A stretch of DNA of 64,000 nucleotides, from sequence record MG655267.1; one strand, 5' to 3'. The translations under genes were made by a program, and so were the position numbers. Of this stretch, positions 5,451 through 63,906 are shown one piece after another; the first letter of the stretch is position 1, and every line of letters begins with the position of its first letter. The notes below the pieces were generated by a model. The model made no database searches. It saw nothing but the letters and a program-made list of their open reading frames with translations, and was not told where the DNA came from.

Positions 5451-5661
5451 AGTTAACATCGAGCAGGCCAATCGTTATGAGGGGTCTACCGATGATTTGG
5501 TCCAGCAAGCTAATGATCGTGGTTTTCTCCAGGGGATTCGTATCACTTCTGGCGAGGACATCGATCCAAGCATTTGGACGCCTGAGAAGATCGAAAAGTT
5601 GAAAGCTGCACTTCGACATATTCGTGACTCAGAACAACGCATCAAAGGTAGCCAGGGGTAA
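5431..5661 (+). CDS. Hypothetical protein
   Basis: GTG 5431 preceded by GAGGG; the stop sits inside a hairpin. Confidence 0.55.
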   Translation: MDINPTEVNIEQANRYEGSTDDLVQQANDRGFLQGIRITSGEDIDPSIWTPEKIEKLKAALRHIRDSEQRIKGSQG

Positions 5662-5680
5662 CACCCTGGCTTTATGCCGG
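5651..5680 (+). terminator. Hairpin + TTATGCCG gene-end element
   Basis: GCCAGGG-GTAACA-CCCTGGC followed by TTTATGCCGG. Confidence 0.6.
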
Positions 5681-5699
5681 TTTAACGAGGACGTGTAAC

Positions 5700-6155
5700 A
5701 TGGAATCGAGCGGTTTGATTACGCTGGCAATGCTCTTTTTAACCTTCGTCATCGGGTTGTGTTGTTGGCTGACGCGTTTCATACGCTATCACACCAACCG
5801 CTACACCGTTGACACCAAGAAGGCATTAAAGCAATTTGCCTGTAAGCTTGAAAGAGTACTGGATGTCCCGCAGCCGTATTCGCTGGCACAAAGCGAAATG
5901 ACAAGGCTGGATAATGAACTGAACGCTTCTCTCTTCCTCTTTGAAGAGATCACAGGGAAGATCCACGATGAAACCAGTCGACTGTACCTGGAGTCAAGTT
6001 TCATGGTGGTGCGCGGCACTCAACACGATACCCCGATTCGTATCTGTGTGGCGAACACAATCTTCAGCCTGTCAACGACTAACCACAATCACCACAGCGT
6101 CATGAAGGTCATCAACGACTTTAATAACCGCTTGGCTAAAATTGTAGAAAGTTAA
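5700..6155 (+). CDS. Hypothetical membrane-anchored protein
   Basis: GAGGA SD; N-terminal hydrophobic helix LITLAMLFLTFVIGLCCWL. Confidence 0.72.
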   Translation: MESSGLITLAMLFLTFVIGLCCWLTRFIRYHTNRYTVDTKKALKQFACKLERVLDVPQPYSLAQSEMTRLDNELNASLFLFEEITGKIHDETSRLYLESSFMVVRGTQHDTPIRICVANTIFSLSTTNHNHHSVMKVINDFNNRLAKIVES

Positions 6156-6169
6156 GCACAGAAAAACTC

Positions 6170-6182
6170 AGACCTATATCAC
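6170..6182 (+). promoter_or_regulatory. Putative early (virion RNAP) promoter motif variant
   Basis: AGACCTATATCAC preceded by an A-tract. It matches the AGACCTACATTA motif elsewhere in the window and resembles the phiKZ early consensus TATATTAC. Confidence 0.5.
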
Positions 6183-6230
6183 GCCCGTGATAGACCCCTC
6201 AACCCCCATTAATCTTAAGTGAGTTCAATC

Positions 6231-8473: not shown

Positions 8474-8525
8474 CGGCATATAGGCCCTCCGTAATGGAGG
8501 GCCTTTTATGACATCTTTTTTTTTT
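8474..8525. terminator. Bidirectional terminator between convergent genes
   Basis: CGGCATA + AGGCCCTCC-GTAAT-GGAGGGCCT + TTTATG...T10. Confidence 0.8.
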
Positions 8526-11039: not shown

Positions 11040-11507
11040 TTACTTTTTAGTGGGGTCGACCTGAACCGGGTCATTGAGTTTGCTTGCTGCGCCAGCGGCA
11101 ACCGCGTTAGCATGGGCGCTGTCTGACATGGTCAGAATGGCAGCACCGTGACGTTGCATCGCATCCAGCAATTTACTCTGCAGGACGATGTATTGTTCGT
11201 GCACACTGAGGAAGTCAGCGATGGTGCTGTCATGCAAGGCATAACCGGTTTTGCCTTGATGCTGCTGCTTGATCATCGGCAGTGTTTCATCGATCTCTTT
11301 GACTACAGCCAGCGCCGCTTCGATGTGCGAGCTTAACGCAGAGGGGTTTGGCTGAAAGCGAATGATGTTGGTGTTGACGGCCATGAGGCAAGTGTTGCTC
11401 AGCTCATTGCGCAAATTAATCGTATAAGTTGCCGCAGAATCCAGGTACTCCCAGAACTGATCGGGCTGATGGACCTCTGGTGCGAGAGGCGGTTCATTGG
11501 TTGACAT
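11040..11507 (-). CDS. Hypothetical protein (core-block position)
   Basis: 155 aa helical ORF upstream of, and co-oriented with, the chaperone gene. Confidence 0.7.
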   Translation of the reverse strand: MSTNEPPLAPEVHQPDQFWEYLDSAATYTINLRNELSNTCLMAVNTNIIRFQPNPSALSSHIEAALAVVKEIDETLPMIKQQHQGKTGYALHDSTIADFLSVHEQYIVLQSKLLDAMQRHGAAILTMSDSAHANAVAAGAASKLNDPVQVDPTKK

Positions 11508-13827: not shown

Positions 13828-13840
13828 AAACCTACATTAT
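13828..13840 (+). promoter_or_regulatory. Putative early promoter motif
   Basis: AAACCTACATTAT at the start of an accessory island. Confidence 0.55.
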
Positions 13841-13873: not shown

Positions 13874-14590
13874 ATGTATGGTCTATTGATCTTAGCACTA
13901 CCCCGGTCACCGTACGTCCACATGAGTGCGATGACTGCGGACAGGTTTACTGAACTGCTCCCACAACTCCAGAAAGAGCTCGATGCAGATATCTTTCCTA
14001 ATGTGTGTTTCCAGGGTGCATTCAATGTCAGTAATACCCGTACGGTCACTCAGCTGTTTATTCCGTGTAGCGGATTGGTGGCGGCACGGGAGTTGGGGTA
14101 TGAACAGATCCGCAATATTCTCGCCAACCCAGAGAAGGAAGTCCAGCATGTCACCAACATCGGTGATTGGCTGGGTATTCCTGGTAAGGTGATGTTTGAT
14201 AATGCGGATGGATCTGTGGATGAGGTCGTTGTGACTGACATGTACAAATATCTGGTACATGAAAGAAGAGAGCGCTCTGTCTTTCGGTTCAGTCCTATTG
14301 ATCTTAGTATAACCGATACCGAACCATTACCAACTCACCTCTACCCACGTGATCATTTCTACGACCAGGTCTACCTCGACAAAGACGGCGAGCGTGCTTT
14401 CCTGTCTTACGGGTCGTGCGGTGAGGAAGGCTGTGTCATAGAACCCAGAGAAGAGAAACCCGTGCAAGTGTACGGCGTTACCTACTCGTCACTGGATGAA
14501 GTGGCCCGATGCTATAACCTGCCTGAGCAGTACGTGAAAGAACGCGTTGAGTCTGACAGCCTTGAATGGCTGGAGTGGTCATATTTGTAA
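13874..14590 (+). CDS. Hypothetical protein with C-terminal NUMOD1/IENR1-like HTH; paralogue of 18136..18918
   Basis: AAGGAG SD; VTNIGDWL and VTDMYKYL motifs shared with 18136..18918; C-terminal GVTYSSLDEVARCY. Confidence 0.75.
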   Translation: MYGLLILALPRSPYVHMSAMTADRFTELLPQLQKELDADIFPNVCFQGAFNVSNTRTVTQLFIPCSGLVAARELGYEQIRNILANPEKEVQHVTNIGDWLGIPGKVMFDNADGSVDEVVVTDMYKYLVHERRERSVFRFSPIDLSITDTEPLPTHLYPRDHFYDQVYLDKDGERAFLSYGSCGEEGCVIEPREEKPVQVYGVTYSSLDEVARCYNLPEQYVKERVESDSLEWLEWSYL

Positions 14591-14718
14591 AAGTATTTGG
14601 GGATGAGACGCAGAGCTGATTCCCATCTACGGTAAGTTGTTCAAGGAAGCAGCAAACCGGTTATAAAAAATGAAAGGGTTTTCGTAAGATAGTCAGTGCT
14701 CCGCACCCGAGACAATAC

Positions 14719-14916
14719 ATGACCACAAACCCGCAGTTTATTTTCGTGGCTCAGAATTCTGATGCTACACACAGCGTAGAGAAACTGGAAGTAGGACGCG
14801 ATACCGATACCCAGAAGAACCTCACGGAACTTCGTAAAGGTTTGCCGTTCGACTTCTCGTTTATCATGTCTGAAGAGGCGATCTATCAACTTCGACAGGC
14901 AGGGCACATCAACTAA
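14719..14916 (+). CDS. Small hypothetical protein
   Basis: 65 aa immediately upstream of the Tad2-like gene; weak SD. Confidence 0.55.
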   Translation: MTTNPQFIFVAQNSDATHSVEKLEVGRDTDTQKNLTELRKGLPFDFSFIMSEEAIYQLRQAGHIN

Positions 14917-14931
14917 ACTGCTGAGGTAGTC

Positions 14932-15384
14932 ATGACGAACAAATCGGAGATCTCACACGGTGGTGGTGATCAGCCTATGGAAAAAGAGCAAAGCAACTTA
15001 TCCGTACTGGTGAACTACTCCACAGGTGTGATGGAAGGTGACCGTTTTAATTACTCGGTTGCATTGGCGCTGTTGAAAGACGGCATCAAAGTGAAACGCG
15101 AAGACTGGAAGAACGCTTTCCTGGTGTTCGTCCCGGGTAGTCAGAATGTTGAACTGCCAAAAGGGTCGCCGTATGAAGTCGCACTCCACGGTAAGAAGTC
15201 CGTTGCCAATATTCGTCCGCACATCGATCTGTACACGGAGTACGGTGAATTCGAAGTCGGTTGGACCGCCAACCAGGAAGACACCAACGCCGATGACTGG
15301 ATGATTGTCTTAGACAAGAACACCAATCAAGACGACAGTGCCGACGAAGAGAAAGAGTCCTCAAACGACGACTCGAAGTCATAA
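14932..15384 (+). CDS. tad2: DUF2829 / Tad2-like anti-defence nucleotide-sponge protein
   Basis: FNYSVALALLKDGIKVKREDW...HIDLYTEYG...WTANQEDTNADDWMIV matches the Tad2/DUF2829 pattern F..AL..LK.G..V.R..W ... W...Q.D..A.DW.IV; GAGGT SD. Confidence 0.8.
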   Translation: MTNKSEISHGGGDQPMEKEQSNLSVLVNYSTGVMEGDRFNYSVALALLKDGIKVKREDWKNAFLVFVPGSQNVELPKGSPYEVALHGKKSVANIRPHIDLYTEYGEFEVGWTANQEDTNADDWMIVLDKNTNQDDSADEEKESSNDDSKS

Positions 15385-15418
15385 ACCCCAGGAGAGCTTC
15401 GGCTCTCCTTTTATGCCC
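15379..15418 (+). terminator. Hairpin (UUCG loop) + TTATGCC element
   Basis: AGGAGAGC-TTCG-GCTCTCCT followed by TTTATGCCC. Confidence 0.7.
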
Positions 15419-15433
15419 ATTAAGGAACATGTC

Positions 15434-15793
15434 ATGAGTGAAAAGAAAGCGTTTGAAGTGGTATTGGATAGCCGTCATGAACCGTACGAGGCTTACCAGT
15501 TATTAGTGGCTCGCATCAATACCTTATTGCGCACCGGTCAAGGCTACCATGAAGTGAAACTCACGAAGTGGCAGCTTTACGATAACGGTCTTCTTATCAA
15601 AGGAGATGATGATGTGCATATCTCCTTGTTGCGTCATTTCTATTACGACGAACAACGCAATACGTTTGGTGGTGGCTTCATGGCCTTTGAGATCCTGGAA
15701 GATTTGGGTCGGTACTACAAAGTGCCCGATATCACAGAAGGGATGGGCGAGAACGTTGGCCTCGTCTTCACGGTCACGGTAACCACACCATAA
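15434..15793 (+). CDS. Hypothetical protein, tandem family member 1
   Basis: AAGGA SD before ATG 15434; KGDDDVHISLLRHFYYD aligns with member 2. Confidence 0.75.
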   Translation: MSEKKAFEVVLDSRHEPYEAYQLLVARINTLLRTGQGYHEVKLTKWQLYDNGLLIKGDDDVHISLLRHFYYDEQRNTFGGGFMAFEILEDLGRYYKVPDITEGMGENVGLVFTVTVTTP

Positions 15794-15799
15794 GAGGTT

Positions 15800-16168
15800 G
15801 TGATGAAACCACTCTTCGCCATGAAGTTTGATACCCGGGATGCGGGATTAGGGGATCAACTCGATCTCTTGCAATCACGGGTGAAGGCTTACTCTAAACA
15901 CGGCACCATGATCAAAGATGTGGCGGTGACTGCCTGGGTGGTCTGTTCGGATAACATGCCAGTTGCCGGTGATGACCCTGCTCATGTCAGTATTATCCAC
16001 CGTTACCGTTACGACATCGAACAGCAGTGTGTGGTCGGTGGGGTCAGTGCCATGGATGCTCTGCGTGAGATCTGGTCGGCGTATGGTCCTGACTCTACCC
16101 TCCCACCGTTCAGCCGGATACCCGGTGCTGTCGATATGCAATTTACCTTAACTGTGTTCACTATTTAA
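15800..16168 (+). CDS. Hypothetical protein, tandem family member 2
   Basis: GAGGT SD; contains AGDDPAHVSIIHRYRYD and VAVTAW. Confidence 0.75.
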   Translation: MMKPLFAMKFDTRDAGLGDQLDLLQSRVKAYSKHGTMIKDVAVTAWVVCSDNMPVAGDDPAHVSIIHRYRYDIEQQCVVGGVSAMDALREIWSAYGPDSTLPPFSRIPGAVDMQFTLTVFTI

Positions 16169-16181
16169 AGGAGATACCCTC

Positions 16182-16571
16182 ATGGGAGTTTCTGCTGCTG
16201 CTCGTCGTTCTAAAGAAGGGGTGTTTACCCGTAGCATTGAAGTGCGTCCAGACCACTGGAAACGGGATATCACTGATTTAGGACTGGATGTCCATAACCT
16301 GGTGTTGTGTAAACAGGAGATCGTGTCAGTGACCGTCACGGCTTGGCGGGCGTATGACGAGTGCGGTGTACTGCGTGGTAGTGCCAAAGAGTTGAAGTTA
16401 GACATTACGGAATGGTTCCTCGGTGACAAAGGCCCGGTCATTAATGATGCGATCAAACCTCTCACGTTTGCCTTCATCATTAATCAACAACGCAGCCAAC
16501 GCACGCCCTGGGTAAAAGATGTCCGCTTAGGGCTTAACCTGTCCATTGTCTACAAGAGGATTCAGCAATAA
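16182..16571 (+). CDS. Hypothetical protein, tandem family member 3
   Basis: AAGGAG SD; VTVTAW motif; C-terminal strand LGLNLSIVY. Confidence 0.72.
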   Translation: MGVSAAARRSKEGVFTRSIEVRPDHWKRDITDLGLDVHNLVLCKQEIVSVTVTAWRAYDECGVLRGSAKELKLDITEWFLGDKGPVINDAIKPLTFAFIINQQRSQRTPWVKDVRLGLNLSIVYKRIQQ

Positions 16572-16915
16572 TGGAAATTGTCCACCAACTCGATCTTAGC
16601 CACGGCTGGGAACCCTTCAACCGCCTGAAAGCCGCCTTTGCCAAGAAACCCCCGGAGGCGATCCACATCACTGCCTGGGTTGCTCATGGTTATAAAGGAA
16701 ACCTCATCGGTGATGAGCAAGTGGTGAAAGGGTCGTGCCAGGAGTGTCGGATTGATGTGACCCACATCTTCTTCCCCAGTCGGCCTGAGATCTTGATTGG
16801 TTTGTCGAGCTTCATTAACACCATTAATCGTGACGGGCCGGTGAAGATCCCGGCCTGGACCGGATCGATTACTCTTTGTCTTGAATTAGCGATAAGTTAT
16901 ACGGATAGAATTTAA
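16571..16915 (+). CDS. Hypothetical protein, tandem family member 4
   Basis: GAGGA SD; TAATG coupling; IHITAW motif; C-terminal LCLELAISY. Confidence 0.72.
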   Translation: MEIVHQLDLSHGWEPFNRLKAAFAKKPPEAIHITAWVAHGYKGNLIGDEQVVKGSCQECRIDVTHIFFPSRPEILIGLSSFINTINRDGPVKIPAWTGSITLCLELAISYTDRI

Positions 16916-17022
16916 TCGGCATATATTCTGTCTCGTTAGCGTAAGCTCGCTAAAAACCCTTTTAAAGTTTTGTATAACAAACTATCAACTTTGTAGAAAG
17001 AAACAAATAGGAAATTAATCTC

Positions 17023-52637: not shown

Positions 52638-53979
52638 TCTTTATAATGAAATCATCGCGATCGGGACCAAAGGCGGGCGCAGTGTCTACCGAATAAAGGC
52701 GGAGATCTTTTTTGATACCACCGTCTGTTCGGTATTCCGGGTACGCAGCCTCAATCGCTTTGATGACTTCATGAATCGCTACAGTGAAGAGCTGAACATT
52801 GAAGTGGCAATGTCGGAGGGGGTGTACAACCAACAGATCATCCCCAATGCCACGCGGCTTAAGATGCACCTGGTGATTAACAAGTACGAACCGGGACAAG
52901 AACCCGTCAGTACGCGCTACACACTTCGGGTGTTTCCTAAAACGGGATATGACCCGCAGCTGACACAACAACGGGCCGCGGATATCAACCAGGCTGCGAT
53001 TGCTGCAACCTCCTTGCAGTTCTATCAGTTCCAGTTGTTTACCTCTGCGATTGAACAACTCAGTGCAACGCCGTGTGCCGGGATCTTTCCTACTACCTCA
53101 CCGGCGGCGTTAATTCGGGTGTTACTAGGCGGGGTGTCGGAAGGGCTGGAGTTACCGTTAGAGGAAAAGCCGCTGGGGATGGAGATGTACCCGGTGGATG
53201 CGGTGACGCCAGATGGCAAAGAGATCATCAAGAACCATGTGGTGGTCAAGCCGATTCAGTTGTGTGACTTGCCGGGCTTTCTGCAGCATGAGTACGGGTT
53301 GTACAAGACAGCGATTGGGTCGTATTACCATAAGCAGTATTGGCACATCTGGCCGCTCTATAACACCAAACGGTTTGAACTGGTGCGCAAGAACCTGATT
53401 GTAGTCAACGTTCCTAAGGATAAGTTCCCCAACATGGAACACACCTACGAGATGCGTGGCTCGAGTCTGTGTGTCTTGGCGACCGGTGATACTGCAGTGC
53501 ACGACACGTCGAACCTGGCGCAATACCAGGAAGGCAATGGCGTCAGAGCAACCCGGTCCTCTGCGATGAGTGGTGATGAGGGGATGGAGGTGAAGCAGGG
53601 GCAAGTGGTGCTGCAGCGTGGTGCGACTAACTCTGAGTTCATTACCAATACCCGTCAAGGTGCAGTTAACTTTGCCCCCATGGCCGGTGAGATCACGGAC
53701 AACAGTTATCGCATTGTGTCAAAGACCGCAGTTAATAATGGATCTACCATTCAGGTGACCTGGCAGAACGCCGACCCTGAGCTGATCTTCCCTGGCATGC
53801 CGGTGAAGTACCTCTACATGAAGTCGACGGGTGTTGAACAACGCTACGGGACGCTGGTGATGGCAGAGGCGCATTATCGACTGGCACAGGACGGGTTAGC
53901 TGATGAGGTGATGTTGTGTGATATGGCCTTAACCTTGTTCATTGATACCGCCGACGAAACCGCCAACAGTTCATTGTAA
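52618..53979 (+). CDS. Virion structural protein, baseplate-hub-like
   Basis: AAGGA SD; beta-rich 453 aa; ELIFPGMPV motif typical of gp27/hub-type proteins. Confidence 0.55.
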   Translation: MNLEKSSLYNEIIAIGTKGGRSVYRIKAEIFFDTTVCSVFRVRSLNRFDDFMNRYSEELNIEVAMSEGVYNQQIIPNATRLKMHLVINKYEPGQEPVSTRYTLRVFPKTGYDPQLTQQRAADINQAAIAATSLQFYQFQLFTSAIEQLSATPCAGIFPTTSPAALIRVLLGGVSEGLELPLEEKPLGMEMYPVDAVTPDGKEIIKNHVVVKPIQLCDLPGFLQHEYGLYKTAIGSYYHKQYWHIWPLYNTKRFELVRKNLIVVNVPKDKFPNMEHTYEMRGSSLCVLATGDTAVHDTSNLAQYQEGNGVRATRSSAMSGDEGMEVKQGQVVLQRGATNSEFITNTRQGAVNFAPMAGEITDNSYRIVSKTAVNNGSTIQVTWQNADPELIFPGMPVKYLYMKSTGVEQRYGTLVMAEAHYRLAQDGLADEVMLCDMALTLFIDTADETANSSL

Positions 53980-53994
53980 TTAGTGACATTCATC

Positions 53995-54028
53995 CCTAGT
54001 CTTATGAGCTCCTGGCTCATAGGCTAGG
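53995..54028 (+). terminator. Hairpin at the end of the structural operon
   Basis: CCTAGTCTTATGAGC-TCCTG-GCTCATAGGCTAGG (one bulge). Confidence 0.5.
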
Positions 54029-54042
54029 ATGGATTTATTCTT

Positions 54043-54055
54043 AGACCTACATTAT
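54043..54055 (+). promoter_or_regulatory. Putative early promoter motif
   Basis: AGACCTACATTAT, about 35 nt upstream of ATG 54089. Confidence 0.6.
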
Positions 54056-54088
54056 CGAGATGATCCAATAAAATATAAGGACTTCACC

Positions 54089-55567
54089 ATGAGTCGCAAT
54101 TTCTCGTTGACCACCCTCATCAATCTCCTTCAAGCTGAGCTCGATTGGTACTCTACCCAGTTTCCTGAGTTTGAAGCCGATGTGCTGGACATTGTTAATA
54201 ACACCATCAGCGGTAAGTTAACCGCCAGTGACTTTGGCTGGACTTATAATCGCCTGATCTCTAAGTTCGGTCTGGTGATGCAGGATACCGGTAACCCGCG
54301 GGCAAGGTTCTTGCGTTGCATCGTACCGAACTGCACCCATGGTATTATCCCACAGCTGCAGAGCATTCGTAATTACGGCGATCAACACATCGATCGTGAT
54401 CACATCATGGCCAGCGCTGTAGAGATCTTGTTGGGAAATTCCGTCGCCCCGATTATCAGCAGTTTTTATAAAAGCATCAAGCAGGGTGGCGATACTGCAC
54501 CGTGGGAGCGTGAGGGCTATTATGAATTGTTGTATATGCGCTTGCGCAACAACCGCCATCAATTCCCTTCAGGCTTTCAGGTGCTGCAACCCCAACCGCG
54601 CTTGACGGATGAACTCTCCACTGAGATCTATCGTCGCTTTGATGAGATTGTCGGTACCCTGGAGAAGTTTAACAGCGACCCACAATACGCGTCAGAGAAC
54701 TACACCCTGCACGGCCTGCAAGATCCGTGGACTCATGCCGGGACTCGGGGCGATACCATGGCAGCGAAGTTGTGCCGTGCAATTGATGGTGAACACCCCC
54801 ACCACTATGACGAAGATGAAGACGAGGAGCTTTCGTTTAACCTCACGCCCTATAACCCGGAAGCGGATTTAGTGAGCACGCTGAATAACGTGCATCATCT
54901 TCAGCCGATTGTGAAAGCCATCGTCAGTGCGGCAGCCACCAAAGAGTCTATTGATGAACGTTACCCGTTTCGTCAACCTCACGGTGTGCTTCAGTTGGTG
55001 CAGAAAGGTTACTTCGATGGCCTGACCCCAAAACACCTCAATGAGATCTACAGCACCGATCTCACGATCCCTGCGATCCACAACGTGTTAAGTAAGGTAA
55101 CTTACTATAGTCGCGATGACCGTGCGCAGCTTGAACTCGACCAGAACGGCAACATTCCTGATCGTCAGATCAACCCGGTAGTCACTAACTTTAACCAAGC
55201 TTTAAATCGCGCATACCCAACCAATATCCCGTTACTGACCATTCCGATGCCGGTGGCCATGAACGAAGAGCTCGACTTTGCAGTCCTCGCGAAAACCGAG
55301 ATCAGAAACTATAACCGGGATGGGTATCTGTGGTTGTTGCTCGGTATCGTCTTTGACATCAGTAAAATGACCGTGACGTATCGCCGTCAGCTGAACCGCA
55401 TCAAAGGCGTGCCGTTACGTAAGGTGTGGGAATTGCCTCTGATCGTCACACCACATCGCACCATCGAAGAGATCTTTGCTGATCTTGGTTATGAAATCTT
55501 AGAGGTAACTGATCCAAATGCCAAAACAGAAGCTCCAGTTCGAAAACCTGGTGGCAAGCGTAAATGA
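54089..55567 (+). CDS. Hypothetical protein
   Basis: AAGGA SD before ATG 54089; about 490 aa with an internal acidic patch DEDEDEE. Confidence 0.78.
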   Translation: MSRNFSLTTLINLLQAELDWYSTQFPEFEADVLDIVNNTISGKLTASDFGWTYNRLISKFGLVMQDTGNPRARFLRCIVPNCTHGIIPQLQSIRNYGDQHIDRDHIMASAVEILLGNSVAPIISSFYKSIKQGGDTAPWEREGYYELLYMRLRNNRHQFPSGFQVLQPQPRLTDELSTEIYRRFDEIVGTLEKFNSDPQYASENYTLHGLQDPWTHAGTRGDTMAAKLCRAIDGEHPHHYDEDEDEELSFNLTPYNPEADLVSTLNNVHHLQPIVKAIVSAAATKESIDERYPFRQPHGVLQLVQKGYFDGLTPKHLNEIYSTDLTIPAIHNVLSKVTYYSRDDRAQLELDQNGNIPDRQINPVVTNFNQALNRAYPTNIPLLTIPMPVAMNEELDFAVLAKTEIRNYNRDGYLWLLLGIVFDISKMTVTYRRQLNRIKGVPLRKVWELPLIVTPHRTIEEIFADLGYEILEVTDPNAKTEAPVRKPGGKRK

Positions 55568-55913
55568 TTTCGCTGGTCAACTGGGTCAGGTAGCTGTGCT
55601 GATCGAAGGCTTTGATGGGGGCGCTAAGCGCCCCTACTTAGCGTTTGCTCTCCATATGCTCCTTTCATCAGACGCGTCCGAGCGACTGGGTGCCGGTTGG
55701 TACCTGCTGCTCATTCGGGCTATGTACAACGAACTCGGCCATGAGTTCACTACCGTCGATGAGTTAGATGACTTCATCGATACCTTTTATGACTTGTTTG
55801 ATGCGCACAACATCGAACTGAACGACGCCGTCGTGAACGAATTGAATATCGCTTTCGACATGTTTGAAGAGTCACTCGACCTGGGTGATGCCACCGACGA
55901 GTATGACGACTAA
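55518..55913 (+). CDS. Small, highly acidic hypothetical protein
   Basis: GAGGT SD; 21 D/E and no K/R in the last 60 residues. Confidence 0.72.
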   Translation: MPKQKLQFENLVASVNDFAGQLGQVAVLIEGFDGGAKRPYLAFALHMLLSSDASERLGAGWYLLLIRAMYNELGHEFTTVDELDDFIDTFYDLFDAHNIELNDAVVNELNIAFDMFEESLDLGDATDEYDD

Positions 55914-55942
55914 TTCCTATCCTTAATTAACCGAGACGTAAA

Positions 55943-56164
55943 ATGAAAAAGAACATCCTACTGGCTGTGGTCCTGTTGTCCGCACTTCCTTCTGTAAAGG
56001 CATCCATGGATGTCCCGCCAGATCCGTACACCATTCAGTGTTTATCGGAGACTGAATGCTTTTATGCTAATGGACGTAAAGTGACTGAGCAGGAACTTCA
56101 GAAACTGGCGCTCCTGATTCAACAAGAGGAACAAAATGAGTCAAGTCAAAACAATGACGGCTGA
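55943..56164 (+). CDS. Small secreted protein
   Basis: MKKNILLAVVLLSALPSVKA signal peptide; C-x5-C pair. Confidence 0.65.
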   Translation: MKKNILLAVVLLSALPSVKASMDVPPDPYTIQCLSETECFYANGRKVTEQELQKLALLIQQEEQNESSQNNDG

Positions 56165-56918
56165 AGAGATCAGAAAGGCGATGTGGGTCTATGATGCATT
56201 GTCTAACAGCCACCGTGGTCTGTATGTCAAAGCAGAAGGTCCGGATGGTTCGGGTAAGTCAACCTTTGTGAAACTGCTAACGGAATGGTTGCAGACACAG
56301 TTAGGTAACAGCCGGGCGATTATGACCCGTGAAATGGGCGGCACTGCACAAGGTCGTGTCTTTCGTGAAATGGTGCTCTTCCCTAAAGAGACCCAAGAGC
56401 TGGATCTGCAAACTGAAACGCTGCTGTGTTGGGCTGATCGGGTTGAAGGTCAGAAGCAAGTTAAAGCCTGGTTAAACGCCGGGATCGCTGTGGTTCAGGA
56501 TCGCACCTACTTCTCCACCTACGCTTATCAAGGCATGCTGTACGGACAGTCACCGTTGGTAAGCAAGATTCATTCCGGCCTGGACATCATGAACGCGGAT
56601 ATCGTGTTTGTGTTGGACGTTGACCCAGAAGACATTCTGGCACGCGTAGGTCGTCGTGAAGCAAAGGGTAATGAAGATCCAACGGGTAATGACCGGATGG
56701 ATGTGATGACCGATCGGCAGCTAAAAGACCTCTGCTACTTTTACCGGGGTATTGAGCACCAGATGCCCGCCTGTGCCAATATCAAACAATCTAAAGTCAT
56801 CCACCTGGATGGCCGGCAAACGCAGGAGCAACTGCTGCAGGATGCCATTGTTCACTTAACCCGTTTTCTGGATGAGAAGGAACGCGAAGCAAATGACCTC
56901 TGCCGTGCTATTTGCTAA
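56136..56918 (+). CDS. tmk: Thymidylate (dTMP) kinase
   Basis: P-loop EGPDGSGKST, TREMGG and QDRTYFSTYAYQG. Confidence 0.9.
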   Translation: MSQVKTMTAEEIRKAMWVYDALSNSHRGLYVKAEGPDGSGKSTFVKLLTEWLQTQLGNSRAIMTREMGGTAQGRVFREMVLFPKETQELDLQTETLLCWADRVEGQKQVKAWLNAGIAVVQDRTYFSTYAYQGMLYGQSPLVSKIHSGLDIMNADIVFVLDVDPEDILARVGRREAKGNEDPTGNDRMDVMTDRQLKDLCYFYRGIEHQMPACANIKQSKVIHLDGRQTQEQLLQDAIVHLTRFLDEKEREANDLCRAIC

Positions 56919-57204
56919 TGTGACCGAACCCCTGTTACTGAAACTCAAAGAGGTGAATGAAGCGGTTGACCTCGAGTGGTTGATTGAACAGGGTAAGATG
57001 GTCAGTCTTATTCGTAAGAACGTCGTGCGTGCTGAACGTGACGACGGTGCGTCTGTGCATGTGATGGTGTTTCCCCGCGAGTATCTTCTGAACCTCGCTG
57101 AACGCCATGACGATGCGCAATATCAGGCCTGGTTAATCGAAAGCAAGATCAAGCCCTTTAAAGAGCATTACGCTCACGGCAGTCTCAGTATGTACGTGTA
57201 CTAA
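56893..57204 (+). CDS. Hypothetical protein
   Basis: ATG 56893 with upstream AAGGA; followed by a terminator. Confidence 0.62.
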   Translation: MTSAVLFANVTEPLLLKLKEVNEAVDLEWLIEQGKMVSLIRKNVVRAERDDGASVHVMVFPREYLLNLAERHDDAQYQAWLIESKIKPFKEHYAHGSLSMYVY

Positions 57205-57208
57205 CTTT

Positions 57209-57242
57209 AAGCAGGAGTAAGGAAACTTACTCCGCTTATGCC
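57209..57242 (+). terminator. Hairpin (GAAA loop) + TTATGCC element
   Basis: AAGC-A-GGAGTAAG-GAAA-CTTACTCC-GCTT-ATGCC. Confidence 0.7.
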
Positions 57243-57267
57243 AATTTAATTTAACCGGACGTGTATC

Positions 57268-57678
57268 ATGAAATTAGGCTTTTATTACGCATTAGTAAAG
57301 AACCATGTGTCAGGTAAACGTGAGATCTTATCCATCCAACGTGAGAGTGTCGCAGAACTCTTCCCAGTGTGTTATACGCGACTCTGTAAAGAGATTGAGG
57401 AAAACCACAGTGGTAAGTACGAAACCTCAGCATTGGCCTTTGGTGCGCTTAAAATCGAGTATCATGCAGCCAGTCAGTTGGGAACGGTATGGATTGGACA
57501 TACCAAGGTCGGAATCATTACCCCGAAAGCCACGTTGATCTCGGTAGGCGTGGAATATCCGATTGGGACTTTCTACTTATCCCCTCCGCCAAGTCTGCAG
57601 ATTGGTGACCCAGAACTGATTCAGTTACGGGATGTGGTGGCCAGTGTCATTGGTGACGCAACATGGGTGATGAACTAA
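57268..57678 (+). CDS. Hypothetical protein
   Basis: 136 aa; TAATG coupling with the next gene. Confidence 0.7.
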   Translation: MKLGFYYALVKNHVSGKREILSIQRESVAELFPVCYTRLCKEIEENHSGKYETSALAFGALKIEYHAASQLGTVWIGHTKVGIITPKATLISVGVEYPIGTFYLSPPPSLQIGDPELIQLRDVVASVIGDATWVMN

Positions 57679-58175
57679 TGGCGAAGATCAATGTCTCGAA
57701 TGCCACGACCTATAAGTTCTTTAAAGAACGTGCAAACCACACACTGCGTCATTTTGCCCAAGATCTTGATCCGGGTATTCTGCCGGTCGTAAGGGAGCTT
57801 AACGCAATAGAAGGCATCGCCCCTGTCTGGAGTTGTGAGTCACACCCTAAAGGTAATGCACATCTTCTTCGCGAGGCATACGTTATCTGTGTGGTCACTG
57901 GGCGGGGGATGGATAAGTTAGAAGAGATCTATAAAGAATGGATGCGGTTGCTAGACCAAGATCGATCATCCTGGCGTAAAGATGATACCGCCCATTCTCG
58001 TAGAAAACGAGTATTTGCTCATCATGTGGTAATCACAACACGTCGCTTGACTTGGCCTAATGACTTCAGTCGCCACTATACCTCTGTCTGTTTAGGGTAT
58101 GAGCGCCTTAATGCCGTCAACAAGCGCTTGGTGCTTCTGTCGTTTGAACAAGCTATCCGTAACGTAACCTTTTAA
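57678..58175 (+). CDS. TYW3-like (Taw3 fold) protein of unknown function
   Basis: DLDPGILPVVRELNAIEGIAPVWSCESHP resembles the TYW3 N-terminal D..I..L...IN......T.SSCSGR motif. Confidence 0.6.
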   Translation: MAKINVSNATTYKFFKERANHTLRHFAQDLDPGILPVVRELNAIEGIAPVWSCESHPKGNAHLLREAYVICVVTGRGMDKLEEIYKEWMRLLDQDRSSWRKDDTAHSRRKRVFAHHVVITTRRLTWPNDFSRHYTSVCLGYERLNAVNKRLVLLSFEQAIRNVTF

Positions 58176-58182
58176 ACTTAAT

Positions 58183-58251
58183 CGGCATAACCCCCTGAGA
58201 GAGAAGCATTGCGCTTCTCTCTCAGGGATGCCTGAATCTCTTTTTTTTTTT
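58183..58251 (+). terminator. Strong intrinsic terminator
   Basis: CGGCATAA + 15-bp stem CCCTGAGAGAGAAGC/GCTTCTCTCTCAGGG + ATGCC + T11. Confidence 0.85.
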
Positions 58252-58371
58252 AGTCTGGTTAAATATAGTGGATAGAGAATTAACTTGAATAACAAAAAAT
58301 AAAGCAAAGTAATATCAACGCCGGTAAGGGCTACAACAGTTGTTCTAATTTTCAGGCACGTAGCCTAGGAG

Positions 58372-58409
58372 AAAAAAAAGGAGGAAGCAGCTTATCCAGT
58401 TACTTCCTC
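58372..58409 (-). terminator. Intrinsic terminator after the DnaB-like helicase
   Basis: Minus strand reads GAGGAAG...CTTCCTC-C-T8. Confidence 0.65.
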
Positions 58410-58450
58410 AAAAACGTTATTTCTCGTCGTCCCCATTCTGGGACATAGTA

Positions 58451-59983
58451 TTACCCAAACCACGGAGCTCCACCGCCATCAGAGTTTGTCTCTCCGGCAA
58501 CGTGCTTACGGGATTTGTCCTTTCCATTCACATCATCAAGAATACCGACTCCAGGTTCGAACTTGTAAACGCAATATTTATCACGCTCAGGTGTAATCGA
58601 AATGGTGCGATGCTTACCGCGCTGAATGCACAGATAAGACTCTTCACCAACACGGACAATATGGATAATCATTTCCACATCGACTTCTTGGTCGATCTTG
58701 GTACAGTTATCCCAATAACCTTTATTCGCTGTTTCACGTGGAAGGTCTTCTTCGAGACCGTTACGGACCAGCATCTTCGCAGCAGGACTCAACTGATGCG
58801 GAGTAATGACACAGATACCACGAGCTGAAGTAAAGTTACGGACACGACGGAAAAGATCACGGTACTCTTGTCCCGCAACACCTTTCTCGCAACCTTCTTT
58901 ACTGAACATCCCCAGGTAGTCGATGGTTAATAGATGAATCTCATAGCCCATGTTCTCAAAGTGCTTGATACGCTCAAAGAGATTACGGTAACCAAACTGC
59001 GATGGGTTAACACGACAGAAGTTGACTTCATAACCGTTAATAGACAAGGCGGCTAAGACTTCACGGGCTGCTTCCGCTTCGTCTACTGTCTGATGGTTAT
59101 GATCCAGTCCATCGATGTTTGCTTTGATCTTCTTCCACCACAGAACCATGTTGTCGGTCATGTTGTTTTCAGAAGAGATGTGCATGATCATCGGTTTCTT
59201 CTTCGGATCACGCATGTACGGTTTGTTAAAGGTGGCGATCTGCCGTGTCAGGTCCATGGTGAAGCCGGTCTTGTTGTTGTGCTGCAATGCGCCAATCAAG
59301 ACGAACTCACTGCGACGGAACCCGCCCACTTCACCCAGCATGCGGTTGATACCGGTGTAACCTGTCTTTAATACCCCAAGCGTAGAAGACTCTTCTTTCG
59401 CCTGCTTAAAGATCTTACCCACTTCTTCCAGGTTACTGACCGTGATGTCAGAGATCACCGCTGGGTCAAACTGCTCAGAGACACCGATGTTAACCGTTTC
59501 AATCTCTTCTAACAGCTTGACCACCGCAGAATCCATGTCGATGTCTTCACCGCCAAAGATGATAGGTGCTGCAAACCGCTTGATGATGGCCTTCGCCCGA
59601 CGGTGCTGATCCCACTTACGCAACTCACGTCCAATGGCAACCACAGACTGTTTGGCTTTGTAAGGATCATCCTCGGTGCTGCTGACACCCATTTCTAAGG
59701 CTTGGTAAGTTGCCGCGTCATGGCCGCAGTCAGTTAACAAGCGTTGAAGCAGATCAGTTTTATCCAGTGGTTGATTCTTAGGACGACTAATCATCCAGCG
59801 AATAGTACGGCGTAAAGCCAGCTGTACATTGCGGGATTCGTCATCACCTGTACCTTCAACAGGGGTCGGAATGTTATCCAGGAGCTCATCAACGAACTCA
59901 CTGCTGTCATCGCTGTCAGTGCCAACAATGGACTCTTGATAAAATAACGTAATAATCTTTATGAGTAATAGAACGGTTTCCAT
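58451..59983 (-). CDS. dnaB: DnaB-like replicative helicase (phiKZ gp118-like)
   Basis: GAGG SD before ATG 59983; INRMLG..GG, Walker A variant GALQHNNKT, ISSEN, Walker B TIDYL, TPHQLS and QRGKHR. Confidence 0.87.
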   Translation of the reverse strand: METVLLLIKIITLFYQESIVGTDSDDSSEFVDELLDNIPTPVEGTGDDESRNVQLALRRTIRWMISRPKNQPLDKTDLLQRLLTDCGHDAATYQALEMGVSSTEDDPYKAKQSVVAIGRELRKWDQHRRAKAIIKRFAAPIIFGGEDIDMDSAVVKLLEEIETVNIGVSEQFDPAVISDITVSNLEEVGKIFKQAKEESSTLGVLKTGYTGINRMLGEVGGFRRSEFVLIGALQHNNKTGFTMDLTRQIATFNKPYMRDPKKKPMIMHISSENNMTDNMVLWWKKIKANIDGLDHNHQTVDEAEAAREVLAALSINGYEVNFCRVNPSQFGYRNLFERIKHFENMGYEIHLLTIDYLGMFSKEGCEKGVAGQEYRDLFRRVRNFTSARGICVITPHQLSPAAKMLVRNGLEEDLPRETANKGYWDNCTKIDQEVDVEMIIHIVRVGEESYLCIQRGKHRTISITPERDKYCVYKFEPGVGILDDVNGKDKSRKHVAGETNSDGGGAPWFG

Positions 59984-60011
59984 TATGCCCCTCGTTATAA
60001 GGTAATTAACC

Positions 60012-60641
60012 ATGTACAATGAAAAGTTGGTAATTGTGCCAGCGCCAATCCTTCGGGCTATTCACAATGCAAAAGAAAGTGAAGCAATTTTAACGTGTCC
60101 GAAAAGAATGCTTTCCATATTATCCAGACGTGATGTCATTTTCTACTACGTGGTGAATACTCTTCTTTGTGACTATTCCTATAAAGCAGACCCAGCCAAC
60201 CCAGAACCACCATTGGTGTCGGCGCTGCGGGATCTGTTGTCACACACTAACGGCGTAATGAATGCCTTTACCTCGCCGGCGTGGGTTGCGTTTGTTGATG
60301 AGAACGACGCTGATATCCAAAGCGAGCGTCGACTGAAAGCGCGTAGTATCTATGAGTACCTGACTGGTGAACCGTATGCATGGAATTCAACAGAAGGTGA
60401 CGATTCTTTAAGCTATATCTATGACACCCAGGCGAAAGTCGTGGGAGGTGAAGCCGTTGCAGTGTTGATTAATGCTGTGAAGGAGAACGATAGTTACAAT
60501 ATCATCAGTCATCAACGTTTATTCGAACAAACCATTCTGGCGTTCACTACACTGACAGCAGACACCAAAAGCTTTGCTTCCCTTTATAAAGGCTTTTGTG
60601 AACTGGTTTACCAAGACTCGCTAATCCGACGTTTTGTGTAA
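60012..60641 (+). CDS. Hypothetical core protein upstream of the capsid gene (phiKZ gp119-like position)
   Basis: AAGGT SD; 209 aa; divergent from the helicase. Confidence 0.72.
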   Translation: MYNEKLVIVPAPILRAIHNAKESEAILTCPKRMLSILSRRDVIFYYVVNTLLCDYSYKADPANPEPPLVSALRDLLSHTNGVMNAFTSPAWVAFVDENDADIQSERRLKARSIYEYLTGEPYAWNSTEGDDSLSYIYDTQAKVVGGEAVAVLINAVKENDSYNIISHQRLFEQTILAFTTLTADTKSFASLYKGFCELVYQDSLIRRFV

Positions 60642-60646
60642 GAATC

Positions 60647-60663
60647 TATGTAATAGTATGTAA
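60647..60663 (+). promoter_or_regulatory. Putative late (non-virion RNAP) promoter(s) for the capsid gene
   Basis: Two TATGTAA copies 10 bp apart; TATG is the phiKZ late-promoter consensus. Confidence 0.55.
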
Positions 60664-60783
60664 ATTGCCATTTCGATGGCGGCGTACTGTTATGACCGTG
60701 TGTTAGCGCGACACAACCCCCTGTTTATGTACATAGACAGGTAATATCGAAAACTTATATAAGTTATTGAAGGAAACAACGAA

Positions 60784-63051
60784 ATGGCATTGAAACTTCT
60801 GCATGTAGCTAAAACCGCCGACATGCTGTCACGCATCCAATCTCAGATCAATGGCGGCCATGCATCAGGCGACGCTACCGCGGTTAAAAGCTACGGTATG
60901 GAGTCGCTTGACGGCAACACTCTGGGCGCGCAGGAAACCGCCATCAAAAATGGTATCTCTGTCATTACCGACGTGATCGCTCAGGGCACTGCATCTCAGG
61001 GCCAGAGCTACGCCGGTAACGGTCTGGAAGGTTTCTCTGATGCACAGATCCAAGCGGCATCAATCGCACTGACTATCGGTGGTGACTTCCAGGGTTACAT
61101 CGGTGCACTGAAAAACAACTCTAACCGTGCCATGTCTGCATCTGACCTGAGCCTGGTTTCCGGTAGCCGTTACGGCTCTGCTAACATGAAGCAGGGTTAC
61201 GGTACCGAAGCTTTCGAACAGGCGCAGAGCTTTGTTCCTCAGCAGAACGCAACGGTTGAATACAACCTGAAAGCGGCTAAGCAGGATGCCGTTGGTGAAG
61301 CCTTCTTCCCAACTACTACCCTGACGCCAAACGACATCGGCCTGAGCGTAACTGTGCCGGTTGACATCGTTGAACCTTTCATCAAGCACAAAGCAAATGG
61401 CGAAGTGACGGATTGGCAGCGTAAGAAGCTCATCAACGCAATGCGTGACCCGACCATTCTGCGTAACGACGCGATCAAGCTGATTCCTTATCGTCCACTG
61501 GACGGCAGCAACGACGCACAGTTCGCAGTAGGCGTGCCGAAGTTCAACGAAATTCAGGGCGGCGAAGAAGTACCAACTGGTGCACTGAAGCCTGGTATCA
61601 AAATCGGTTTCATGGGTCTGTGCTCTACTCCGTCTCTGGTTCAGGCCGGCGCGCTGGAAGCATCTGATCAGATCGACACCGGTGCTCGTCTGCAGTACAT
61701 CTGGATCGAAGTAGCTAACGCCTCTGGCACCAAAGAGCTGTTCAAGCTGCGTACTGATCACCTGGATCGTTCTACCTTCCAGAAATCTCAGGAAGGCGAT
61801 AAGTTCGAGACGTCTCTGGACTTCTCTAACATCACCATCGCGCTGAACGACCTGAACAAAACCACCGACAACACCGATTCAGCTCTGCTGGCTCCGTTGG
61901 TGACTTCTGGTCAGCAAGCGATCCTGGCGCTGGATATCAAAGGCACCATGAACCACGAGAAAGGCAGCCTGGTAGTTAACTCGCTGACTAACCCGTCTAT
62001 CATCCGTGTTTACGATACCGTGGCTAAAGAAGATGCGAACACCAAGTCTGGTGCTCTGCGTGACGCAATCGACGCTCTGACGATCACCTTCAAAGGTTAC
62101 TTCGTCCGCGCTAACCTGCGTAACAGCAACTTCCGTACCCGCGAGCAGCGTGTTGACCGCCAGACTTCCATGTACAAGTACATGGTACAGCTGGGCGCAC
62201 CAATCACTGCTATCGCTCCAGTAACTGACGCATGGGGCCCGAAAGAGTCTATCGCAGTTGAAACCCTGAGCAACGCAACGTATGCACGTAACTCCGCAAT
62301 GGCTATCAGCCGTCTGCTGGACTACGTTGAAACCATCCGTGATGCAGGCGTGACCAACAACGGTCTGTGGCAGCGTTACGATGAGAACAGCATCGAAGGC
62401 GTTGGTAAAGCTGTAGTTGATCCATGGTACGGCGAAGGTAGCTTTGACATCTCTAAAGTTGTCAACGGTGTTAAATCTTCTCAGACCCGCGACGACGTTT
62501 CTGAAAAGATCCTGAACATCCTGCGTACCTACGCATACCGCATGAACGCCGAGTCTGGCTACAACGTTGCACTGCAGATGCTGTACAACGAAGTTCAGCC
62601 AACGCTGGTTATCGCAACCGACAACATCATCGCGCAGTACCTGATGGAAGTTGGTGACCTCCGCACAGCTGGTATCAGCTTCAAAGTGCACGTGGCCACC
62701 ACCAACAACATCGAGATGCGCGGCAAGATCATCATGACCCTGTCTCGTATGAAGTCAGGCGGTCTGGATCTGCTGACGTTCGGTATGCACCTGTGGGTGC
62801 CTGAGATCGTAGCAACTGTTAACGTAATGCGTAACGGTACCTACATCGAAGAAACCATGGTGCAGCCGCGTAACCTGCACGTAGTGGTTTGCCCAATCGT
62901 GGCGAACATCACCATCACCGGTCTGGAAGAAGCGTACACCGGCAAGATCACTGTCCCTGTTGACATCGTGAGCGAGCCTGAGTCTGCTGGTACCCAGGAC
63001 CTGGGTGGTCTGAACACTACTCCGGCAACTACTACCAACCCTGCTGCGTAA
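60784..63051 (+). CDS. Major capsid protein precursor (phiKZ gp120-like)
   Basis: 755 aa; GAAGGA SD; extreme codon bias; GMES, GLEG and GTEAF maturation sites; C-terminal capsid motifs such as VQPRNLHVVVCPI; position after the DnaB/gp119 pair. Confidence 0.9.
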   Translation: MALKLLHVAKTADMLSRIQSQINGGHASGDATAVKSYGMESLDGNTLGAQETAIKNGISVITDVIAQGTASQGQSYAGNGLEGFSDAQIQAASIALTIGGDFQGYIGALKNNSNRAMSASDLSLVSGSRYGSANMKQGYGTEAFEQAQSFVPQQNATVEYNLKAAKQDAVGEAFFPTTTLTPNDIGLSVTVPVDIVEPFIKHKANGEVTDWQRKKLINAMRDPTILRNDAIKLIPYRPLDGSNDAQFAVGVPKFNEIQGGEEVPTGALKPGIKIGFMGLCSTPSLVQAGALEASDQIDTGARLQYIWIEVANASGTKELFKLRTDHLDRSTFQKSQEGDKFETSLDFSNITIALNDLNKTTDNTDSALLAPLVTSGQQAILALDIKGTMNHEKGSLVVNSLTNPSIIRVYDTVAKEDANTKSGALRDAIDALTITFKGYFVRANLRNSNFRTREQRVDRQTSMYKYMVQLGAPITAIAPVTDAWGPKESIAVETLSNATYARNSAMAISRLLDYVETIRDAGVTNNGLWQRYDENSIEGVGKAVVDPWYGEGSFDISKVVNGVKSSQTRDDVSEKILNILRTYAYRMNAESGYNVALQMLYNEVQPTLVIATDNIIAQYLMEVGDLRTAGISFKVHVATTNNIEMRGKIIMTLSRMKSGGLDLLTFGMHLWVPEIVATVNVMRNGTYIEETMVQPRNLHVVVCPIVANITITGLEEAYTGKITVPVDIVSEPESAGTQDLGGLNTTPATTTNPAA

Positions 63052-63076
63052 GCACCAGGCGCGAGAGTAATCCGTA

Positions 63077-63118
63077 GCGCATAAACAGAGGAGGAGCATT
63101 GCTCCTCCTCTTATGCCG
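63077..63118 (+). terminator. Hairpin + TTATGCCG element after the capsid gene
   Basis: GCGCATAA-AC-AGAGGAGGAGC-ATT-GCTCCTCCTCT-TATGCCG with no following U-tract. Confidence 0.75.
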
Positions 63119-63156
63119 TGTGATTTTATAGAGGCACACACCAGGGGCGGATAGTA

Positions 63157-63870
63157 ATGCTTGAATTACTAATGATAGGAAGGAAGAAAGCAACAGGGGG
63201 CGGGGTACCTGCGGATCTTGGACCAGGACCTGCCTCCATGCTTGGGTATTACGAGCGACCGGATGGTGGTAACTCAGGGTACTTCGGTACCTTTACTAAT
63301 TTTGTTTCAACAGCTGGGTTATGTCAATCTATCGGGTTAACTGCAGGTTACCAACAAATTGAGAATGCCACTTGGCATAAGTTTCTGTTAGATGGTAAGA
63401 TCCTCTTTATACCAACCAACTATATTGTGCGTAACCTCCATTGGAACTACATTTATAATGCCGGTGCGGTGTATGGCGATGACAGTTTTGGTGTTTATCA
63501 AAGCCCAACGCCAACAGCACAGAGTGCCAAGCATGTTACCGTGGATGGTCGGGTTTATCGCGTGCGGTTAGTATCTATCTCAAATGGTGATCCGGCTTTG
63601 ACAGGCCAAATCGATAAAACCACCGAATGGGGTCGGTTGATGTATCCGATTGATCCAACAGTCGATGCTAGTAATACTGAAGCGGGTAAGAAATGGGGTA
63701 ACGTGGGACTGCTTTTGAGTTCAACGCAGATTCTGGCAAAGGAGACCTACGCCAGCACACCTGCTAGTAGCCTGGTTGTGGTTACGAATTCTACGACACG
63801 CTCCGCTCAATCTAAATCATCCGCACCCAGTAACTGCACCTGGCGTCCGATTCTTGAACTTGTGCAGTAA
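63157..63870 (+). CDS. Putative virion structural protein, MLELLM family
   Basis: N-terminus MLELLMIGRKK; contains GPGP...GYFG, WHKFLLDGKIL, LIYNAGAVYG-like and WRPILEL motifs. Confidence 0.75.
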   Translation: MLELLMIGRKKATGGGVPADLGPGPASMLGYYERPDGGNSGYFGTFTNFVSTAGLCQSIGLTAGYQQIENATWHKFLLDGKILFIPTNYIVRNLHWNYIYNAGAVYGDDSFGVYQSPTPTAQSAKHVTVDGRVYRVRLVSISNGDPALTGQIDKTTEWGRLMYPIDPTVDASNTEAGKKWGNVGLLLSSTQILAKETYASTPASSLVVVTNSTTRSAQSKSSAPSNCTWRPILELVQ

Positions 63871-63874
63871 GCTC

Positions 63875-63906
63875 TAAGAGGAAGGCTCCGGCCTCCTCTT
63901 ATGCCG
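63875..63906 (+). terminator. Hairpin + TTATGCCG element
   Basis: TAAGAGGAAGGC-TCCG-GCCTCCTC-TTATGCCG. Confidence 0.7.

Follow-up and report, generated by a model that had tools for sequence, protein, structure and literature searches.

The DNA analysed here (the window, 64,000 bp) matches with 100% identity positions 208,229-272,228 of the Erwinia phage vB_EamM_Bosolaphorus genome (MG655267.1), at the right end of the 272,228-bp record. Bosolaphorus belongs to the genus Agricanvirus (Ea35-70/RAY group) and is a phiKZ-like jumbo phage, whose capsid protein has relatives in phiKZ, 201phi2-1, Goslar, PCH45 and others. Fragments of the β and β′ subunits of RNA polymerase (RNAP), encoded by split genes, are annotated as gp2, gp165, gp166, gp225, gp250, gp251 and gp273. 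Matches to σ70-type promoters were depleted by about half relative to shuffled sequences (9 vs 22.0 in window 14000-33999, and 11 vs 19.3 in 44001-64000), which is consistent with transcription that is independent of the host RNAP. At gene ends in the window lies a GC-rich hairpin followed by the 8-mer TTATGCCG, and the subject of this work is this unit and its probable role in transcription termination. For genome-wide tests, the whole Bosolaphorus genome was rebuilt from fetched segments.

Hairpin and 8-mer units in the window

The units found after single genes on the plus strand are as follows. After gp262, at a co-directional position, the hairpin at 5650-5671 is followed by TTATGCCG at 5672-5679, with neither a 5′ complement nor a T-run (minimum free energy [MFE] -19.3, z -3.3). 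After gp276, a UUCG-loop hairpin (15390-15409) is followed by TTATGCCC (15411-15418), and this unit is kept in the related phage AH06. The hairpin after gp301, which encodes an internal head protein homologue, spans 41842-41869 and carries TTATACCG (41868-41875), and the one after gp315 (57214-57233) carries TTATGCCA (57236-57243) and shows compensating stem changes in AH06. The unit of the major capsid gene, gp320, consists of a hairpin at 63087-63111 and TTATGCCG at 63111-63118, lacks a T-run (MFE -25, z -6.5), and has a partial 5′ complement, GCGCATAA. After gp321, the hairpin at 63880-63897 is followed by TTATGCCG at 63899-63906, with a CCTACATTAC box 19 nucleotides (nt) further on. Two units lie on the minus strand: TTATGCCG at 21748-21755 with the hairpin at 21757-21777 after gp287 (3′ copy only; in AH06 the stem is rewritten and the motif is kept), and TTATGCCG at 22853-22860 with a longer, irregular hairpin at 22865-22896 after the DNA polymerase gene gp288.

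At each of the five convergent junctions in the window (8471/8537, 20587/20651, 29244/29291, 44575/44613 and 58175/58451), a hairpin has the motif, or a variant of it, on both sides. Between gp267 and gp268 (8474-8525) the two strands share the hairpin at 8482-8504; on the minus side it is followed by ATATGCCG (written CGGCATAT at 8474-8481), and on the plus side by TTATGACA and ten T residues at 8516-8525. The gp284/gp285 junction (20601-20652) has CAGCATAA at 20601-20608 (TTATGCTG when read on the minus strand) and a hairpin at 20608-20630 (z -4.9), and on the plus side TTATGCCG at 20633-20640 precedes ten T residues at 20643-20652. At gp292/gp293 (29247-29298), CGGCATAA at 29247-29254, a long hairpin and TTATGCCG at 29291-29298 provide the exact motif on both strands, and the whole folds as a single extended stem (MFE -37.7, z -6.7). 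The gp303/gp304 junction (44574-44612) is built of GAGCATAA (44574-44581), a hairpin (44581-44604) and CTATGCCG (44605-44612), and its loop is inverted in AH06. At gp317/gp318 (DnaB; 58183-58251) a 17-bp hairpin (58192-58228) is shared; the minus side continues into TTATGCCG at 58183-58190, and the plus side into 11 T residues at 58241-58251. These three runs of 10-11 T are found in the window on the plus side of convergent junctions only, just past the extended stem, and the four T-run sites checked genome-wide are also on the plus strand. A plus side with a T-run after the extended stem is a canonical terminator, while the minus side carries the motif only.

Exact TTATGCCG occurs nine times in the window against 1.56 expected, a number reached by 0 of 100 shuffles, and TTATGCC occurs 18 times against 6.1 expected. 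All nine exact copies are intergenic and start 0-4 nt 3′ of a GC-rich hairpin arm, and the one-base variants at 15411, 41868, 44605 and 57236 likewise follow hairpins. No hairpin was found at the remaining TTATGCC matches of the window (9832, 11238 and 63374 on the minus strand; 25899, 39433 and 48521), which look like chance occurrences. Genome-wide, 34 of the 42 exact copies are directly 3′ of a GC hairpin, compared with a background of 5.3% at random positions; when one-base variants are included, 66 sites lie 0-4 nt past a GC hairpin. A literature match to TTATGCCG, in a paper on Klebsiella phage Miami, proved to be a mere polymerase chain reaction primer.

This motif-first count was complemented by a test that starts from the hairpins, in which 6-mer enrichment was scored in a flank window of strong hairpins. 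Because computed stem ends were off by 1-3 nt, a logo aligned on them was blurred, and k-mer enrichment was used instead. TTATGC was the top 6-mer, present in 46 of 117 sense 3′ flanks of intergenic hairpins vs 0.44 expected, and it was found in 4 of 85 antisense flanks; the top words of this unbiased test were TTATGC, TATGCC and ATGCCG. TTATGC was not enriched as a 6-mer in the 692 flanks of intragenic hairpins, where even a looser TTATGC-like pattern was present in only 9, vs 55 of the 117 sense intergenic flanks. In the curated set of 59 sites, which were chosen as having at most one mismatch, so that position counts are partly given by construction, position 5 is G in 57, position 6 is C in 59, position 7 is C in 51 and T in 7, and position 8 is G in 51.

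The units have a mean MFE of -23.0 kcal/mol, compared with -9.8 kcal/mol for random 53-mers, and representative window units are more stable than their shuffles (z -2.9 to -6.7). The 3′ arm of the hairpins is 83% pyrimidine and the 5′ arm is purine-rich (GGAGAGG...CCTCTCC). The tail directly 3′ of the stem is UUAUGCCG, in place of the U-tract of ∼7-9 nt of a canonical intrinsic terminator: at 48 of the 59 curated sites, including the copy after the capsid gene (63111), there is no run of six or more T within 22 nt. In a scan of 40 kb of the window for hairpins followed by a T-tract, sites were no more numerous than in shuffles.

A first-pass annotation of this DNA had listed copies of the motif 3′ of hairpins. 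All of them exist, with four positions 1 nt too low (5671, 15410, 21747 and 22852 for 5672, 15411, 21748 and 22853). Its further statements, that the reverse complement lies on the correct side of minus-strand units (21748 and 22853), that convergent pairs carry both flanks and that several copies lack poly-T, agree with the data above, and the genome-wide enrichment near hairpins that it anticipated was seen in both tests.

Orientation, junction type and conservation

At the curated sites the hairpins begin 4-35 nt past stop codons, and in 56 of 59 intergenic sites the strand of the site is that of the upstream gene. Convergent and divergent junctions were counted from the GenBank annotation, because our own gene calling was imperfect (the first caller missed ∼10% of annotated genes). 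Genome-wide, 17 of 18 convergent junctions have a unit, the lone exception having no intergenic space, and a hairpin plus motif was found at 0 of 18 divergent junctions. An oriented 8-mer that is enriched throughout a genome might also be a DNA-level signal apart from transcription, serving replication, nicking, packaging or recombination. We regard this as barely plausible: the 8-mer is tied to one place, 3′ of hairpins that come right past stop codons, its strand switches with the genes, and in relatives it coincides with RNA ends (see below).

One copy departs from the usual arrangement. At genome positions 11329-11336, between the co-directional genes gp7 and gp8, an exact copy is antisense, with CGGCATAA 5′ of the hairpin and no sense-strand motif. 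It could be the terminator of antisense transcripts or of an unannotated minus-strand gene.

The junction counts bear directly on a second alternative, that the motif is a promoter or couples termination to re-initiation. Positions 2-5 of the motif are TATG, the core of the late promoters of the non-virion RNAP; the motif carries it on the non-template strand, and in phiKZ late promoters TATG is required and transcription starts at its G. The next start codon follows many co-directional copies at a distance of 12-130 nt, and a hairpin-less TTATGCCC is found 21 nt upstream of gp319, at a place syntenic with the phiKZ promoter P119L. However, a promoter at a convergent junction would be aimed at the end of the opposing gene, and the motif with its hairpin is missing from the divergent junctions, where promoters must lie. 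When TTATGCC was considered as a promoter at those 18 junctions, none had a hairpin, and TATGT-type and CCTAYATTAY boxes were found instead. Moreover, the candidate late promoters here and in phiKZ and 201phi2-1 read TATGTA rather than TATGCC, and the phiKZ and 201phi2-1 sites were called as 3′ ends and not as start sites. In comparison with a phiKZ late promoter, the motif stands at gene ends rather than starts, has CCG instead of TA downstream of TATG, and differs by ∼4 nt in active-site register. A promoter or re-initiation role for the units is thus quite unlikely, and the suggestion of the first-pass annotation that TATG might couple the two processes is not sustained.

Boxes without hairpins are of interest in their own right. 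Upstream of the capsid gene, TTTATGTACATAGAC (60724-60738, with TATGTA) resembles phiKZ P119L (GCTATGTAGACAG; GCTATGTAGAC). The box upstream of gp319, CCATTATGCCCC (59980-59991), is kept in AH06. Judged by their sequences, both are candidate late promoters. A different box, CCTAYATTAY, has 16 intergenic copies genome-wide, all on the plus strand (window 13831-13839 and 63925-63933; genome e.g. 32730, 40030, 65522, 86280, 170036 and 174383). Many of these copies stand 15-30 nt past a terminator unit, and some come behind a T-run. Since similar boxes, TATATTAC, are found after the terminators of phiKZ and 201phi2-1, CCTAYATTAY is probably the early (virion RNAP) promoter of Bosolaphorus.

Co-directional and convergent sites differ in their 5′ flank. 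The 36 co-directional sites have the 3′ copy only, and their best upstream match to the complement CGGCATAA averages 4.2 of 8 positions. At the 21 convergent sites the upstream complement is usually present (a mean of 6.05 matches of 8), and therefore one palindrome serves both strands. On the plus side of several convergent junctions the order is CGGCATAA-hairpin-TTATGCTG-C-T10, in which the 8-mer can pair with the upstream complement via a G-U pair.

To follow the units in a relative, ten junctions were compared with their orthologues in AH06, which is ∼83% identical in DNA. All ten sites have kept the 8-mer intact, while loops differ and flanks diverge. The stems change in a compensating fashion, e.g., from GGAGTAAGG/CTTACTCC to GGGGTAAGG/CTTACCCC. 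The fixed 8-mer and the compensated stems show that both structure and tail sequence are under constraint. In two bidirectional hairpins (window 29244-29291 and 44575-44613; 15215-15262 and 30645-30690 of the compared AH06 segment), the AH06 loops are the exact reverse complements (TTGC/GCAA and GTTT/AAAC) and the stems are the same. The palindrome has thus flipped between the two phages.

The palindromic form of the convergent sites, with both halves folding into one long stem, raises the question of whether TTATGCCG is just the outer half of a longer palindrome (CGGCATAA...TTATGCCG), and thus a structural by-product, or part of a mobile repeat of the repetitive extragenic palindrome or miniature inverted-repeat transposable element type. 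A few near-identical copies do occur (AGAGGAGGAGC...GCTCCTCCTCT, at genome 96282 and window 63087). Yet the 36 co-directional sites have the 3′ half only, stems and loops vary widely between copies with the 8-mer alone constant, and the sites are orthologous and kept in AH06, with an orientation that follows the gene strand. We consider this origin very improbable. The position of the units, their strand and junction rules, and their conservation were thus observed in Bosolaphorus itself.

To learn how far the motif extends, 16-50 kb around the capsid gene was surveyed in each of a number of phiKZ-like phages; these are small samples, and absences are provisional. TTATGYYG is enriched directly after hairpins in AH06, pEa_SNUABM_48, Goslar, phiKZ, 201phi2-1, PA1C, PCH45 and PhiEaH1, and Vibrio pVp-JHP1101 and Ralstonia RSL2 have single sites, one of them after the RSL2 capsid gene. 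In the sampled regions of SPFM2 (Seoulvirus), CR5, FBKp24 and 2050HW the motif did not appear, again a provisional result from small samples; there, hairpins are followed by TTAT and T-rich tails. The GYYG part seems, from these sequences, to be lineage-specific. What is new here is the extension of the motif, as read from the genomes, to Agricanvirus and about nine further phiKZ-like lineages.

Terminators and RNA 3′ ends in phiKZ and 201phi2-1

The termination sites of two relatives have been mapped. In phiKZ, Oxford Nanopore Technologies (ONT)-cappable-seq yielded 133 termination sites (Putzeys et al. 2024, microLife, PMC10914365), and 61 predicted intrinsic terminators share a stem-loop and TTAT, with the motif BCCYCCCCHWWDGGGRRGGBYTTATKYYGT (PMC10914365). 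In 201phi2-1, studied by the same group with ONT-cappable-seq and having 132 termination sites, the same motif is motif A (n = 59), and a motif B, when added to A, lengthens the hairpin (PMC11512511). Motif B would by our inference be the upstream complement, with CGGCATAA as its counterpart in Bosolaphorus. The motif was confirmed directly in both genomes.

The Bosolaphorus element is the Agricanvirus version of this published phiKZ-type terminator motif. In both cases a GC-rich stem-loop is followed at once by TTAT and then by K-Y-Y-G, the units stand after genes that include the major capsid gene and are bidirectional at convergent pairs, and the phages have their own multisubunit RNAPs (virion and non-virion in phiKZ). 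There are also differences. phiKZ uses the forms TTATGTTG, TTATGTCG, TTATGCTG and the U-rich TTATTTTC, whereas the Bosolaphorus 8-mer is almost fixed as TTATGCCG. The polarity of the stem is reversed, the 5′ arm being purine-rich in Bosolaphorus and pyrimidine-rich in phiKZ and 201phi2-1 (GCCCTCCC...GGGAGGGC).

To locate the RNA 3′ ends, published coordinates were placed on the genome sequences. Five sites were reachable in 201phi2-1; for phiKZ, the transcription termination sites of Table S4 of the bioRxiv preprint that fall within two phiKZ segments were analysed. The 201phi2-1 ends (arrow) are TTATGAC↓G, TTATGCC↓G, TTATACC↓G, TTATGTT↓G (after the capsid gene) and TTATATGC↓CG, with the mapped ends at position 7 of the 8-mer. 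At the TTATG-type sites of phiKZ, the RNA ends at positions 6, 7, 7, 4, 7 and 6 of the motif, and the end of a re-annotated non-coding RNA is TTATATT↓C. Hence, in these phages the RNA ends 6-8 nt past the stem, mostly on a pyrimidine at position 7, and the conserved G comes next. The 201phi2-1 paper interprets long stems via antitermination, and reports neither the position of the 3′ end inside the 8-mer nor a spread of the motif beyond phiKZ and 201phi2-1 (PMC11512511).

Eight 201phi2-1 terminators were active in a two-reporter assay in uninfected Pseudomonas chlororaphis (PMC11512511). Of the five motif-bearing sites in this assay, three were stronger than lambda T0 and one was its equal; the remaining site, 189,851, is not listed among those matching or beating lambda T0 (PMC11512511). 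It was thus others who showed, in relatives, that RNA 3′ ends coincide with the motif and that the units terminate transcription in reporters; the ends were located within the motif here. These results separate two parts of what the first-pass annotation proposed. A directional gene-end signal that replaces the U-tract stands, given its strand bias and its coincidence with mapped RNA 3′ ends in two relatives. That it is read by the phage RNAPs rather than as a host-type terminator is not established, because four of five 201phi2-1 copies work at least as well as lambda T0 in uninfected cells, with the host RNAP alone.

A model for termination within the 8-mer

We consider it likely that the hairpin plus TTATGCCG serves this phiKZ-like phage as its standard terminator of transcription, and that the polymerase stops inside the 8-mer. 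The best-supported description is an intrinsic-type terminator in which the U-tract is replaced by UUAUGYY↓G. The nascent RNA would fold into the GC-rich hairpin and the polymerase would halt 6-8 nt later, within the 8-mer, so that the released RNA would end in ...hairpin-UUAUGCC and the conserved last G would be the next, unincorporated nucleotide. UUAUGYY↓G would then stand where an ordinary intrinsic terminator has its U-tract. UUAU may be the weak upstream end of the RNA:DNA hybrid, melted by the hairpin, and the pyrimidine-then-G at positions 7 and 8 may keep the enzyme properly spaced from the stem. At convergent pairs, CAUAA/UUAUG pairing could extend the stem into the hybrid region, the plus-strand T10 following thereafter. 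By analogy with the relatives, the same termination would occur in Bosolaphorus.

Positions 7 and 8 resemble a known signal. The general pause consensus of multisubunit RNAPs is G-10, Y-1 G+1 (PMC12288461), and the elemental pause signal is said to act from bacteria to mammals (PMC6336406). The ends mapped in relatives would share with it an RNA 3′ end on a pyrimidine (position 7) and a G next (position 8); they differ in Bosolaphorus by the absence of G-10. With canonical intrinsic terminators the units share a GC-rich hairpin right after the gene and bidirectional palindromic forms, and the copies of relatives also share a 3′ end 6-8 nt past the stem and activity with the host RNAP in reporters. 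They differ in that the U-tract is replaced: only UUAU is U/A-rich, the conserved GCCG follows, and standard scans miss the units.

Several points weigh against this model. The mapped RNA ends come from phiKZ and 201phi2-1, and Agricanvirus is known here from sequence alone. The resolution of ONT 3′ ends is a few nt, any end just before a genomic A is masked by poly(A) tailing, and two phiKZ ends fall at motif position 4. G-10 of the pause consensus does not occur because the 3′ arm is mostly pyrimidine, and a weak hybrid plus Y/G leaves the conservation of G5 and C6 unexplained. In the small samples of four other phiKZ-like lineages (SPFM2, CR5, FBKp24 and 2050HW) the motif was not evident, so that termination by this polymerase family would not depend on it. 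Finally, trimming by a 3′ exonuclease would likewise leave an end 6-8 nt beyond a stable stem.

This last point leads to a different reading, in which the unit is a tag for RNA 3′-end processing or stability: exonucleases would trim to the hairpin from ends further downstream, and a factor bound to the UUAUGCC tail would protect or mark the mRNA, e.g., for export from the phage nucleus. Such a tag would account for sequence kept beyond the need for a weak hybrid (G5 and C6 are almost invariant), for conservation across phages of Pseudomonas, Erwinia, Escherichia, Serratia, Ralstonia and Vibrio, and for ends at a distance that fits exonuclease stalling. However, the conserved last base, G8, is outside the mapped RNA, which points to the level of DNA or of the incoming nucleotide, and in uninfected cells, where phage factors are lacking, 201phi2-1 copies silence a reporter placed downstream of them. 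We therefore hold processing to be an unlikely primary role.

A variant of the terminator model would explain the sequence by the polymerase itself. At promoters, GP123, the β-like subunit of phiKZ, binds TATG on the non-template strand (PMC12809450). Its pocket might also accept the TATG of the terminator and so stall the enzyme during elongation, in which case one site of a σ-less polymerase would both start and stop transcription; we regard this as a doubtful but real possibility. If it is true, conservation of TTATG..G in at least ten phiKZ-like lineages (36-53% GC, six host genera) would reflect co-evolution with the polymerase, and the retained UUAUGCC tail could also mark mRNAs made inside the phage nucleus.

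The basic observation has been published for two relatives, and the gain here is an extension and not a discovery. It provides a usable rule for marking the ends of transcription units in Agricanvirus and many other phiKZ-like genomes, in which standard terminator finders fail because the U-tract is lacking. It also sharpens the question of how a hairpin and a conserved non-U 8-mer stop non-canonical phage RNAPs and, apparently, the host RNAP. An RNA end just before a conserved G, together with the wide conservation, makes this question testable with the existing in vitro system of the phiKZ non-virion RNAP.

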